Counted from the first letter of the stretch, positions 22,989 through 32,870 are shown. The stretch: DNA of 64,000 bases from Octopus sinensis (GCF_006345805.1 NC_043002.1:94612001-94676000), one strand, 5' to 3'. A program made the numbers and translations. The notes: a model not told the origin generated them from the sequence alone.

Positions 22989-23340
22989 TGGATGAAACCA
23001 TTGGCCATATCATGAACGAATGCCATAGAGTTGTTCAAAACCACTACAAGTTATGTCGACACGATCAGGTAGCGAAAGTGCTACGTTGGAAACTGTGCGA
23101 AAAGCGGGGGGGGGGTAGAGAGAGTGGCAAGGCGTGGTATGAGCACAAACCGCAGAGAATGGTGGAGTCGGAGACCAGCAAAATCCTCTGAGGTCTTCCC
23201 AATCCAAATAGATAAGGCGCTTGAGCATAACAGACTGGACTTAGTGATGGTGAACAAGGTACACCACAAGTGGTATATAGTTGGTGTCGAATGCCCCTTT
23301 GACCCACGAATAGTCAGGAAGGAAGGAGAAAAAGTAGATA
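22989..23340 (+). mobile_element. R4/Dong-like RLE fragment, left half (split by the Tx1 array)
   Basis: [50 protein letters not shown]; continues at 32581. Confidence 0.85.
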
Positions 23341-23524
23341 GATAGATAGATAGATAGATAGATAGATAGATAGATAGATAGATAGATAGATAGGTAGGTA
23401 GGTAGGTAGGTAGGTAGGTAGATAGATAGATAGATAGATAGATAGATAGATAGTTAGATAGATAGATAGATATATAGATAGATATATATATATATAGATA
23501 GATAGATAGATAGATAGATAGATA
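23335..23524. repeat. (GATA)n/(GGTA)n array at the 3' junction of Tx1 copy A
   Basis: Direct reading. Confidence 0.95.
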
Positions 23525-26500
23525 TGTTTCTTTATTAGCCACACAGGGCTGCACACAGATAGAACAAATTACAAGGTAGAGCTTTTCTTTTGAAGGTTTA
23601 AAAAAAAAAAAATAAAAATATAATAATAATAATAAAATAAAAAATAAAATAAAATAAAAAAGGGGGGGTCGATCAAAAGGGATCGTAAAAGGAGAGAAAG
23701 AGGACAAAAAAGGGGGGGTTAAAAAAGGGGGGAGAGGAAAAAAAAAAATTGATCAATAGGGATCGTTATCACAGAAATGTCAATATGAAGTGTAAAGGGG
23801 AGGACAGGTGAGGTTTACCCGTGGAAAGAAAAGCCTACGGAAAAGACCACGGTAACCTCGGTCAATGAAGTCACATGTTATATTCTTTTTTTTTTTTTTG
23901 CAAATAAGCAACTCTCTGTATTATTTTTACGGTTCATAGAATCATAGTCAAGGTGGCTTCGTCATTCATACGTGCCATCCTTGCTACATTCACCCATCTT
24001 TTTTAAAACATTCACTAGACAAAACTTGCCTCTCTACTCTCACTTTTTTCTTCAAGTGATACTTGAAGAAGTTGATGAGAGATTGACCAGAGAGGAAGTG
24101 TTTGTCTCTAATCCTTTCAGAGCCGTCCACCAGATACATTCTTTCGCCATAGCCACAAGTATGATAAAAATAGCTCTTCCTTCCCGTTTGAAGGAAGGAG
24201 GCGTGACGATATTAACGATAGACTCGGCGGATAAACCGACACGTCCCACACGTGACAGCAGCGTTCGACATAAGCCCACAGGTGGGAAATTGCTGGACAC
24301 TGCACGATTGCGTGCAGAGCGGTTTCGTCGCTCTGACCGCATCTCGGGCAGGTCGGCCCGTGTTTCTCGAGCCATGCCTATAGAGCTTATCCCGAACGGT
24401 AGCGCTTCTCGGTAGCACCGCCAGCCAGGGATCTCTGGAAGTTGTCCATAGGTCCCGGCCGAAAGTCGTTTGAAACAGGCGGGTCAGGTATTCCTCGTCG
24501 ACGCCCAGGTTTGCCCCGAGCTCGTCGTCGTACCTCCCCTCCACTAATCCCCTATAGAATGCTTTGGTTGTGTTGAAGTCACTCAAGGTCGACCCGGGAC
24601 GGCAGAGTTGCTTGAGAGCAACGCGACACTCGCGGTGCCATTCGCCCTTCTTCGGCCTCTTTTTTGATCCACGACTGTAGTTCGGTCGTCATGGAGACGA
24701 GTTGCGGGAATGCGTGCCTCACAAACGGCGACCACACCTGTTCACCGTCGTCTACATAGAGCCGGAGATGTCGCAGTCTCAGCGCGTGTCTGCGCATCAT
24801 CAACCACGGCATGCCCAGCCCTCCTTTTAACGGGTGTTGACAGCAAATGGATCGCCTGACCATCGGGACGCATCCTTTCCACAAGAAGCGGAAGAGGATG
24901 CGTTCTAGTTTGGTGATGGTAGGGTCGGGACAAGGTACGACGGTCAGGCGGTAGTAGATGATGGACGCGATGTACGCGTTCACCACCTCCGCCCGACCTT
25001 TTAGGGACAGTTTCCTCTCGGCCCATTGCTGGGCGAGAGTGACCACCCTACTCGTTATCTCGTTCCAGTTCTTCTCCATTTGGAGGTCCGGACCGAACCA
25101 GACCCCGAGCAACTCAACCGGGCCGTCTGTCCAGCGTCCCACGACGGAGATACTGGTGGACGGCATGGGTTTACTTCTCCAGGTGCCGAGCCGCAAGCCC
25201 ACTGACTTTTCCCGGTTGATTTTTGCTCCTGTCACCGCTTCGTAGTCTTTCAGTGTCTCGCCGACCCGCTCGATGTGCTCGTGGCTTGACACTATGACGG
25301 TGACGTCGTCCGCGTATGCAGACACGCTCGTCCCGCATCCTAATTCTCGCGGGATGCCCCTCAGAGTCGCCAGCTTCCGCAGTAGTGGCTCAAGAGTCAA
25401 TACGTATAGAAGCGCCGAGAGGGGGCATCCCTGACGGACCGAACGTGCAATGTCGAAGGGTCTCGATAGATGTCCATTTACGCGAATTACCGAACGGATG
25501 CCTCTGTACAAGGCAGCTATCCAGCCGCGGAAGACGGGTCCGAAACCAGCCGCTCTCAGGACTGCCTCCAAGTATCGATGGTCTACCCTATCAAAGGCTT
25601 TCGATTGATCCAAGTTGATCAGGGCCCCACCCATGCCAGGTTCGTTAACTACCCTGTCTATGATGTAGCGCATCAGATGGAGGTTGTCATGGATGCTCCG
25701 GCCCGCACGGCGCACGTTTGTGCGTTGTCGACCAGTTTCTCCATGACAAGCGCCAACCTCTTGGCTAACACCTTTGTCAAAATTTTCAGGTCTGCATTGA
25801 GCAGAGTGATTGGCCTAAAGTTATCTATAATGTTTCCCTTGTTTGGATCTTTCTTCAGCAGAGTTACAGCTCCTCGACTCACAAAACCGGGTATGCTCCC
25901 GTTTTGCTGCCAGTTGCAGTATACCGCTGCCAAGACGTCTCCAAACAAGTCTGGCATACAATAGTAAAATTCGTAGGGTAGACCATCCAAACCCGGTGAT
26001 TTGTCCCTCGAGCATTCTGCCATCGCTTCCCGCACTTCCGCCGCCGTGATGGCACCTTCGCAGCACCCTGCCTTTCTTGTCGAGAGTCGTGGCAGGCTAT
26101 GTAGGTAGGCACTGAAGTCTACCCTACGTTCTTGCCCTCCACTCGTCCCGAACAGTCGGGCAAAATGCTGCTGAAAGGCCTCACACATTTTACTTGGCTC
26201 GAGCAATTCGCGCCCCTGTTCATCTACCAGTGACCGAATGGTGGCTTTGTTGCCCTGTTGCGCCTCTGCCACCCGGGCCTCTCTCGCGGCTCCAACACCT
26301 TCGTTCCTTAGAGCACGCATCCTAGCTCTGACAGCACATCCTTCGTGTTTGGCGTTGAAGTGTTGGTCGAGGGCCAACCTCGCCGCCAAAACGTCGGATG
26401 CGATGCCGCTTCTAATTGCCTCTTCTAGCTTCTTAACTAGCTCACCCTCTACTCTATTTCTATCTATGGCTAGTGCTTTGCTGTACCTAATCGCTTCTGC

Positions 26501-31268: not shown

Positions 31269-32330
31269 AGTTTCTTTATTGGCCACACGGGGCTGCACAC
31301 AGATGGGACAAGTTACAAGGTAGAGCTTTTCTTTTGGGGGATGAAAAAAACAAAAAACAAAAATAAAAGAAACAAAAAAAAAGGGTGGCGTAGGGTTTCG
31401 ATCAAAAGGAATCGTAAAGGGAAAAAAAGAACAAAAAAGAAAAAAAAGAAAAAGAAAAGAAAAAAAAGAAGAAAAGGAAAAGGAACAAAAGAAAAGAGAA
31501 ATGAAAGAAAGAAGAAAGAAGGGGGAAGAGGAAAAAAACTATCAATAGGGATCGTGTATCACAGTGTCATGATGTATGGTGTAAAGGGGAAAGCAAGTAA
31601 GGTTTATCCGTGGGAAGAAAAGCCTACGAAAAAGACCACGGTAACCTTGGTCAATATTGTTATATGTTACCACATTTGTTTGCAAGTGGGTAACCCTCTG
31701 TTTTCAATTTCTGGGTTCATAGGATTATGCTCAAGGTGGCTTCGTCATTCATACGTGCCATTCTTGCTACATTCACCCATCTTTTTTTAAAACATTCGCT
31801 AGACAAAACTTGCCTCTCTACTCTCACTTTCCTTTTCAAGTGGTACTTGAAGAAGTTGATGAGAGATTGACCAGAGAGGAAAGTGTTTGTCTCCAATCCT
31901 TTCAGACGCGTCCACCAGATACATTCTTTCGCCATAGCCACAAGGATGATGAAAATAGCTCTTCCTTCCCGTTTGAAGGAAGGAGGCGTGACAATATTGA
32001 CGATAGACTCAGCTGATAAACCAACTCGTCCCACACGTGACAGCAGTTGTTCGACATAAGCCCACAGGTCGGAAATTGTTGGACACTGCACGAGTGCGTG
32101 CAGAACGGTTTCGTCGCTCTGACCGCATCTCGGGCAGGTCGGCCCCGTGTTTCTCGAGCCGTGTCTGTAGTGCTTATCCCGAACGGGTAGCGCTTCTCGG
32201 TAGCACTGCCAGGCCAGGGATCTCTGGAAGTTGTCCATGGGCCCTGGCCCGAAAGTCGTCCCGAACAGGCGGGTCAGGTACTCCTCGTCGACGTGCAGGT
32301 TCGCCCCGAGCTCGTCGTCGTACCTCCCCT
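31269..32330 (-). mobile_element. Tx1-like copy C, 5'-truncated (1.06 kb)
   Basis: ORF 31717-32238 SLAWQCYREALP..CPRCGQSDETVLHALVQCP; 3' end AATAAAGAAACT followed by TATC repeats. Confidence 0.92.
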
Positions 32331-32583
32331 AAGGTAGGTAGGTAGGTAGGTAAGTAGGTAGATAGAGAGATAGACAGACAGACAGACAGACAGACAGACA
32401 GACAGACAGACATACAGATAGACAGACAGACAGACAGATAGATAGATAGATAGATAGATAGATAGATAGATAGATAGATAGATAGATGATAGATAGATAG
32501 ATAGATAGATAGATAGATAGATAGATAGATAGATAGATAGATAGATAGATAGATAGATAGATAGATAGATAGATAGATAGATA
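32331..32583. repeat. (GGTA)/(GACA)/(GATA)n array at the 5' junction of Tx1 copy C
   Basis: Direct reading. Confidence 0.95.
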
Positions 32584-32870
32584 GAACCCTCTTAATTACA
32601 AAATAGCCTGATCAGGGAAAACGAAGAAGGTGAAGATAGTGCGAATTATTGTTGGGTCGATGGGGGCAGTATCAGAAGGCATCAAGAATAGAGTGCCCAG
32701 TAGAACTGTTACAAAAGGTTTGCTTCCTTGGCACGGCCAGAATAATCAGGTAAGTATTAGATAGATGAAAAGATTGGATAGCATGGTACCGTAGGCTGCA
32801 AGTAGCAAGCCCGCTGCGCATGCAAGACTCAAGGAGCTCTAACAAAACCTGTGATAAAGAGAAATAATAA
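32581..32870 (+). mobile_element. R4/Dong-like RLE fragment, right half plus 3' UTR
   Basis: Continues ...KVDR|*NPLNYKIA*SGKTKKVKIVRIIVGSMGAVS, then IECPVELLQKVCFLGTARIIR*VLDR*; ends in AATAATAAT. Confidence 0.8.

Follow-up and report, generated by a model that had tools for sequence, protein, structure and literature searches.

The locus described here raises the question of why three copies of a single long interspersed nuclear element (LINE) family lie one behind another between four arrays of GATA type, the whole block being lodged in the reading frame of another LINE. It is found in a 64,000-nucleotide stretch of Octopus sinensis DNA (GCF_006345805.1, NC_043002.1:94612001-94676000), which was analyzed at its full length of 64 kb and is referred to as the window. 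Our answer, to which we assign a probability of roughly 0.58, is that one L1/Tx1-group LINE family, homing to (GATA)n/(TATC)n arrays, inserted here three times, independently and long ago, and left a head-to-tail train. The evidence for homing comes from this one locus and its three copies.

When the window was compared by blastn, three copies were placed between the arrays at 23525-29480, 29625-30796 and 31269-32330, all on the minus strand and head-to-tail, and together with Tandem Repeats Finder (TRF) this confirmed the arrangement of three same-strand copies among four GATA arrays that an earlier sequence-only reading had proposed. That reading had also described 3' ends of the form AATAAA(A)GAAA(C/G)(A)T entering (TATC)n with no poly(A), and all three copies were indeed found to end ...GTGGCYAATAAA(A)GAAANN and to continue directly into (TATC)n in one register and without poly(A). 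In the orientation of the element, copy 1 ends ...GTGGCTAATAAAGAAAC-A followed by TATCTATC (GAAAC-A), copy 2 ends ...GTGGCTAATAAAAGAAAG-T followed by TATCTATC (GAAAG-T) and copy 3 ends ...GTGGCCAATAAAGAAAC-T followed by TATCTATC (GAAAC-T). The 17-mer TGTGGCYAATAAAGAAA, searched with up to 3 mismatches allowed, matched the window at three positions corresponding to the three 3' ends and nowhere else. In copy 1 the conserved 3'-terminal motif, defined by alignment with relatives, occupies 23525-23572 on the minus strand (...TTGTTCTATCTGTGTGCAGCCCTGTGTGGCTAATAAAGAAACA), holds AATAAA and leads directly into (TATC)n. The 5' ends likewise adjoin GATA/GGTA units in all three cases (AGATAGAAGATAG in copy 1, ATAGATAG in copy 2 and TAAGGTAGGTAGG in copy 3), two of these junctions being truncation points, again as proposed; every detail of that earlier description that was checked proved right. 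A direct count of GATA runs of at least three units identified four arrays only within the 64 kb, all of them reading GATA on the plus strand, and TATC runs on the plus strand numbered zero. The only four GATA arrays of the window bracket its only three copies of this family, all in one orientation relative to the repeat strand.

Copy 1 spans 5956 bp and, according to the open reading frame (ORF) list, Pfam and blastn, comprises in minus-strand orientation a 3' untranslated region (UTR; 23525 to ~23970), the C-terminus of ORF2 with the zf-RVT region (24052-24586), a reverse transcriptase (RT; 24579-26530, RVT_1 E 1.2e-22), an apurinic/apyrimidinic endonuclease (APE; 26503-27364, Exo_endo_phos E 1.3e-10) and ORF1 with a CCHC knuckle (28008-28651), the 5' region continuing onward to 29480. 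This 5' region aligns collinearly with the corresponding part of a full-length relative from Argonauta and starts within ~160 nt of the equivalent position, indicating that copy 1 is near full length. Its ORF1 and ORF2 are each broken by frameshifts, with at least five frame changes or ORF pieces. Copies 2 and 3, both minus strand, are 5'-truncated: copy 2 (1172 bp) retains the 3' UTR and the C-terminal part of ORF2, begins inside the codons for ..MMRRHALRL and is 80% identical to copy 1, and copy 3 (1062 bp) retains the 3' UTR and the C-terminal ORF and is 81% identical to copy 1. The 173-aa C-terminal ORF of copy 3 is intact (31717-32238), with a CX2C...H...C motif and CPRCGQSDETVLHALVQCP present; this is taken to be a chance survival, and all three copies are inactive. 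A-rich low-complexity stretches of very unequal length were observed in the 3' UTRs (23590-23760, 29745-29782 and 31344-31520, copy 3 being A/G-rich at 31422-31520, for example), and these stretches make up most of the inter-copy gaps; the internal A-rich region of the 3' UTR appears to be a slippage hot spot.

Pairwise comparison by blastn showed the copies to be mutually 80-81% identical, which, together with their different 5' ends, indicates separate insertions. The possibility that they are simple duplicates was ruled out by the different truncation points and the ~20% mutual divergence. The distance among the copies is matched by that to L005 (78%), a contig from an ENA metagenome with no relation to the window, and such star-like distances would fit old copies that each lie ~10% from a common master. 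These data also bear on whether the block is an artefact, either a mis-assembly across microsatellites or the product of unequal crossing-over or duplication between arrays. Assembly errors are common in tetranucleotide arrays of great length; however, neither duplication nor collapse accounts for copies that differ in length and are ~20% divergent, and the outer flanks rejoin as one host reading frame (see below), making an artefact of this kind very improbable.

The arrays were characterized across the 64-kb window using TRF, a unit-by-unit parse and the direct count of GATA runs. The left outer array, L (23335-23524; TRF 47.5 units, 95% matches), which in the orientation of the element is the (TATC)n 3' of copy 1, was parsed as (GATA)14 (GGTA)7 (GATA)8 GTTA (GATA)4 (TA)2 (GATA)2 (TA)6 (GATA)7. 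Array 2 (29481-29624), which runs from the 5' end of copy 1 to the 3' end of copy 2, is degenerate (TRF ~38 units, 82% matches, many indels), and array 3 (30796-31268), in the corresponding position between copies 2 and 3, holds about 118-120 GATA units by TRF and parse (94% matches). The right outer array, R (32331-32585, ~250 bp), was reported by TRF as (AGGT)n at 32332-32365 running into a repeat at 32355-32585 (58 units, 95%), with unit types in the order (AGGT)n, (AGAC)n and (AGAT)n, and was parsed as (GGTA)5 AGTA GGTA GATA GAGA GATA (GACA)10 .. (GACA)4 (GATA)36. Blocks of GGTA are present in both outer arrays, as (GGTA)7 in L and (GGTA)5 AGTA GGTA in R, with isolated GGTA units only in the inner arrays. 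The outer blocks suggest that one compound array, (GATA)14 (GGTA)n ... (GACA)14 (GATA)36, was split by the first insertion.

A split compound array of this kind would also be left if a large GATA/GGTA/GACA microsatellite had grown from TAGATAGATA and had merely tolerated, or retained through low recombination, a LINE with no preference for it. The (GGTA)5-7 in both outer arrays and the (GACA)14 in the right one are as expected for an old split array, and the 19-43 kb region is a pile-up of transposable elements (TEs) and microsatellites. Passive accumulation nevertheless leaves unexplained that 3/3 copies belong to one family whose 3' end enters the same repeat on the same strand and in the same register, and that no other TE family is present in these arrays. 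Chance would match the orientations with a probability of 0.25 and would pair the family with its repeat far less often still, and we consider this explanation improbable.

The order of the parts supports entry into a GATA-type array. In the orientation of the element it is host-right, array R, copy 3, array 3, copy 2, array 2, copy 1, array L and host-left. As a tail lies 3' of its copy and array R lies 5' of the most upstream copy, array R is not the tail of any visible copy, and at least one insertion therefore entered an existing GATA-type array. A microsatellite that had already grown and an orphan tail are the two candidates for the array entered first. Of the proposal that later copies reused the arrays, the part that stands is that at least one insertion entered an array already in place; creation of the arrays by insertion was not demonstrated.

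The earlier reading had noted that removal of the block rejoins the reading frame of an R4-like LINE with a restriction-like endonuclease (RLE). The left half of this host element, copy B (22990-23334, plus strand), is 5'-truncated, abuts an (ATA)n array (22902-22989) at its start and encodes a CCHC motif and the beginning of the RLE domain, as far as ...EGEK(V); in a tblastn search with P0121, the one database homologue of the host that was found (45% identity), it showed 47-49% identity. The right half (32586-32880, plus strand) consists of (N)PLNYKIA..KKVKIVRIIVGSMGAV..LLQKVCFLGTARIIR and a short 3' UTR ending (AAT)3-4, and is 72% identical to P0121 over the last 25 aa by tblastn. Translation of the flanks gave ...EGEKVDR on the left and stop-NPLNYKIA-stop-SGKTKKVKIVRIIVGSMGAV...LLQKVCFLGTARIIR on the right (also read as stop-NPLNYKIA..KKVKIVRIIVG). 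Across the junction copy B aligned without gaps to six homologues, five in-window paralogues and P0121, in keeping with that reading: where copy B reads EKVDR-stop-NPLNYKIA, P0121 has EKCNNYGDLKYEIA and the paralogues at 22276-22719 and 38102-38644 have QKLSKYKDLEVEI and DKLRKYKDLLIEI, respectively. The stop codon at the junction, TAG, sits at an invariant Tyr. If exactly three TAGA units are retained, the host sequence becomes AAA GTA GAT AGA TAG AAC CCT and residues are neither lost nor duplicated. The gapless frame and the stop at the conserved Tyr indicate that any target-site change was confined to GATA-like bases.

The nature of the site before insertion is less clear-cut. The last unique base on the left (the G of GTA) and AAC define 12 nt, of which 11 are array-like and without independent confirmation, so that an 11-nt target deletion would look identical. 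At these 12 nt the paralogues have GTC GGA GAA TAT or CTC AGA AAA TAT, which is purine-rich and not GATA, and no closer copy of host copy B from which empty-site DNA might be read was present in the window. A chance GATAGATA in the host would be the most economical reading of the empty site. The sequence-only reading had gone further, suggesting that the first copy hit a natural (GATA)2 and that the arrays grew by insertion. This was not demonstrated: the empty site is array-like at 11/12 nt, the outer GGTA blocks fit a pre-existing split array, and the ~10 two-unit GATA sites elsewhere in the window are all unoccupied by the element, indicating that bare dimers are at best poor targets and favouring an array expanded beforehand. 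GATA arrays are probably the preferred insertion site of this family, and a bare (GATA)2 as the start of the locus is less probable than that.

The host itself was characterized from a near-complete paralogue at 35019-38668, which contains RVT_1, C..C..H..C, KPDIVV..LIDMSIP..EFDKLRKY and an intact CCHC+RLE ORF. A domain search of this paralogue found no Exo_endo_phos/APE, and its closest solved structures are R2 proteins (E 1e-23). The host is thus an RLE LINE of the R2/R4 group, and given its association with (AAT)n the label R4-like is reasonable. At least six host-type copies besides copy B are present on the plus strand of the window. Host-type copies ending near 21274, 22719, 32762 and 38644, copy B among them, have an (AAT)n/(ATA)n array within 100-200 bp downstream (21607-21631, 22902-22989, ~32862-32880 and 38843-38966), and several of these arrays are followed by the next 5'-truncated host-type copy. 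Array-linked behaviour has been described for Dong, a (TAA)n-specific LINE of the R4 clade (PMC3812793). Seen as a whole, the plus-strand region 19036-43868 holds at least seven host-type RLE copies, mostly 5'-truncated and head-to-tail, with arrays between some of them at 21607-21631, 22902-22989, 33542-33600 and 38843-38966, and forms a second microsatellite-associated LINE train around the first.

The inserted copies had been read as one Tx1 family, and the presence of an APE, an RT and a zf-RVT-type C-terminus agrees with a single LINE family. The domain order of the element is ORF1 (CCHC knuckle), APE, RT and a C-terminal Cys/His region, and PF13966 zf-RVT was found in the close homologues P0001, P0002 and P0122. 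In ORF1 CYTCGSEAHLKKEC is present; the zf-CCHC model scored 19.9 bits (E 7.9e-4), just below the 20.8-bit cut-off, and a Pfam search of ORF1 gave no match to the RNA recognition motif (RRM) model. Compared with solved structures, the RT matched human L1 ORF2p best (E 1.5e-21), ahead of R2 proteins (E 2e-12), which places the element in the L1 group, although the comparison is coarse as only L1 and R2 are represented among solved structures. On these sequence comparisons the family belongs to the L1/Tx1 group, Tx1 and L1 proper being left undivided by the structure comparison. The named protein relatives are from cephalopods only (Argonauta hians 60%, Octopus sinensis 44% and Acanthosepion pharaonis 44% identity), and many L1-Tx1 and Dong-R4 families have been reported in cephalopod genomes by repeat annotation (PMC8967140, PMC13282606). 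Other APE/RT LINE fragments were observed in the window at 16647-17832, 46084-46365 and 49127-50365 (minus strand) and at 10050-10715 (plus strand). The first has 52% aa identity to the APE of copy 1 and the other three have 25-60% aa identity over short stretches; neither the GTGGCYAATAAAGAAA 3' motif nor a GATA array was found at any of these four fragments.

Relatives outside the window, contained in contigs L001-L019, were read at their 3' ends wherever the contig reaches them, and their tails bear on the possibility that (TATC)n is no more than a 3' tail of the element, either templated or produced by RT slippage. In that case insertion would not be microsatellite-specific genome-wide and the locus would be an exception, in which the array was seeded by an orphan tail or a very short insertion and then received later copies whose tails could pair with it. 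A relative with 75% aa identity in the RT (L001, a JGI metagenome contig) ends ...GTGGCCAATAAAAGAAATC and continues as (ATT)n to the end of the contig (2001-2105). The full-length Argonauta hians relative (L007, GCA_054771915.1, BAAFZT010000007.1), with 60-69% aa identity to the inserted family, ends ...GTGGCTAATAAAAGAAATA followed by (ATT)4.7 and then unique DNA; its APE is 51% and its RT 67% identical, a difference uninformative alone. Upstream of this LINE is a train in (ATT)n analogous to the one in the window, composed of the end of a short interspersed nuclear element (SINE), (ATT)3, a 105-bp LINE 3' fragment, (ATT)18, three tandem tRNA-derived SINEs and the LINE 5' end; head-to-tail trains are thus a recurrent feature of the clade and speak for homing. 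The three SINEs each end TTCGGCCCTTGTGGCTAATAGAGAAATC(T/C)ATTT, so the conserved 3' motif is common to the LINE and its tRNA-derived SINE partners in Argonauta, and these are probably LINE/SINE partners that prefer existing tails as insertion site. Several SINE families at 4690-5362 of the same contig have as their last ~40 nt (TTCGGCCCTTGTGGCTAATAGAGAAATC+TATTT) the 3' end of the LINE relative, often in direct head-to-tail order with a 157-bp period and 2.3 copies, and dispersed SINE copies lie at 187, 3165, 11842, 12834 and 15213. The Argonauta SINE is absent from the 64-kb window.

Several of these observations weigh against homing. The different tails behind the same motif, including the (ATT)n of L001, suggest that in this clade the repeat is specific to each lineage and serves, at least in part, as a tail. 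Many Argonauta SINEs are dispersed with a 5-nt TATTT tail only and ordinary flanks, at least one of them apparently with an ordinary target-site duplication, indicating that elements of the (ATT)n lineage also insert outside microsatellites. Among more distant relatives an A9 tail was found (L018 at ~1195-1215, and L019), and two further ends, L003 (1753-1781) and L008 (last 20 nt), are ambiguous, possibly (CA)n. No further GATA-tailed copies outside the locus were retrieved from metagenome, genome and viral contigs. RNAalifold applied to the last 50 nt of nine 3' ends predicted no pairs and no conserved hairpin, so that any recognition of the motif by the RT would be by sequence or by structure further upstream. 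Finally, this is a single locus, and its three insertions are not independent tests because the tail array was available for reuse after the first one.

Of the remaining contigs, L010-L013 stop at GAATAAA, L014-L017 fall short of the 3' end, L002, L005 and L006 end earlier or are chimeric (the close relative L005 stopping ~30 nt before the 3' end), and L004, a 54% relative, is without a definable 3' end. An exact 25-mer of the 3' end gave 0 matches in metagenome contigs, which is uninformative given the 20% divergence between copies. The junction pattern AATAAA(N)GAAANN(TATC)3 gave 0 matches in genome and viral contigs, and a protein-guided locus scan (alignment A2) of metagenome, genome and viral contigs gave pattern matches, none of which was confirmed. 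Within the window, a further L1/Tx1-like copy with 49% aa identity to P0001 was observed at 62330-64000 on the minus strand (also delimited as 62880-64000), running off the window end and ending in (TA)19. The last ~30 nt of its 3' UTR (GTTTATATYTCGCTCAGAGATTTAATATAGC) are present twice, ~310 bp apart, the second followed by TG(TA)19, as if a SINE-like unit that shares the 3' end of the LINE and carries a (TA)n tail lay directly behind it. Across lineages with 50-75% identity in ORF2, the repeat unit after the GTGGCYAAT... motif seems to change.

A family defined by its tail alone would account for the varied tails of relatives bearing the same motif, for the mostly dispersed Argonauta SINE partners and for the unoccupied GATA dimers. 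It would still require tail-to-array homing for 2/3 copies and an invisible first event to supply the 250-bp right array, and three same-orientation copies within 9 kb cannot come from untargeted insertion. We therefore regard it as possible but doubtful, and prefer homing of the family to GATA arrays. A LINE has been called microsatellite-specific when the same sequence type is present in >20% of the flanks of the family's copies (PMC4494074); here the flanks are of GATA type on both sides in 3/3 copies, all in one locus.

If the family homes in this way, the steps might be as follows. The element RNA would end in the conserved ~45 nt stretch including AATAAA, followed by a read-through (UAUC)n copied from the array downstream of the donor. 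The APE endonuclease would nick the TATC strand of an array, perhaps with a preference of its own for GATA, and the (UAUC)n end would pair with the nicked array and prime reverse transcription. The cDNA, often 5'-truncated, would then be joined back within the array. Each insertion would leave array on both sides as a target for the next, with all copies consequently in one orientation. Pairing of this kind would account for the fixed register and lack of poly(A), for trains formed by reuse of earlier tails and for easy change of the repeat unit between lineages. The starting point would have been a short TAGATAGATA stretch, or its immediate neighbourhood, in the part of the Dong/R4-like LINE that encodes the RLE, and we lean towards an array already expanded before the first insertion. 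Read-through pairing in R1Bm and LINEs with 3' repeat tails provide matching precedents for the mechanism. A bolder version, which we think unlikely, places specificity mainly in the few 3' repeat units of the RNA, switchable between lineages as (ATT)n, (TATC)n and perhaps (CA)n/(TA)n; the element could then capture a stretch no longer than TAGATAGATA in ordinary sequence, an array seeded by an orphan tail or by a truncated insertion would recruit further copies, and the LINE would both create and target tetranucleotide microsatellites. That LINE tails can seed microsatellites is an established idea (PMC3812793), and the concept is not new. Of the by-products of the analysis, the most interesting is that within one clade the repeat unit seems to have switched while the 3' motif in front of it stayed conserved. 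Lineages ~75% identical in ORF2, with the same 3' motif and different repeats, offer a natural comparison of the endonuclease and RNA-tail pairing as sources of specificity. If true, homing would help to account for the origin and spread of tetranucleotide arrays in repeat-rich cephalopod genomes, and for annotation the locus is a warning that such arrays hide nested LINE trains.

The sequence-only reading knew of no described GATA-specific family, and likewise no LINE tied to (GATA)n/TAGA was found in the literature searched (Repbase being outside that search). The eel pair UnaL2/UnaSINE1 is a LINE/SINE pair of the stringent type with 3' repeat tails, UnaL2 belonging to the L2 clade and its tail repeats not being thought a target. 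The present family resembles this pair in that a 3'-terminal sequence common to LINE lineages and, in Argonauta, to tRNA-derived SINEs is followed by short tandem repeats, and differs from it in clade and in that no 3' hairpin was detected. Microsatellite-specific LINEs are known from several clades, namely Waldo, (ACAY)n, and Mino, (AC)n, in the R1 clade, Dong, (TAA)n, in the R4 clade, Togen, (TG)n, in the NeSL clade and some HERO families (PMC4494074, PMC3812793, PMC4640811). Like the inserted family, Waldo and Mino are APE-type LINEs on a tetranucleotide or dinucleotide microsatellite, but they belong to the R1 clade of the I group, whereas the RT here is closest to L1 ORF2p. Dong is also a microsatellite-associated LINE found in tandem trains, and the host element, with its 5'-truncated copies and (AAT)n between them, appears to be of this kind; Dong, however, has a restriction-like endonuclease C-terminal to the RT, whereas the inserted family has an N-terminal APE. 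The closest parallels are in the Tx1 clade, in which Kibi targets (TC)n, Koshi (TTC)n and crocodilian Tx1 families (Tx1-1_Crp, Tx1-2_AMi and others) (TTCC)n/(TTTC)n (PMC4494074, PMC3812793). These too are APE-type LINEs of the L1 group with the same microsatellite on both sides and a specificity that varies among related families; in contrast to them, the unit here is (GATA)n, and the present family is represented by one locus and placed to the level of the L1 group only. It is probably a new microsatellite-homing Tx1/L1-group LINE of the Kibi/Koshi kind, and if this is confirmed genome-wide (GATA)n would join (TC)n, (TTC)n, (TTCC)n/(TTTC)n, (AC)n, (ACAY)n, (TAA)n and (TG)n as LINE targets.

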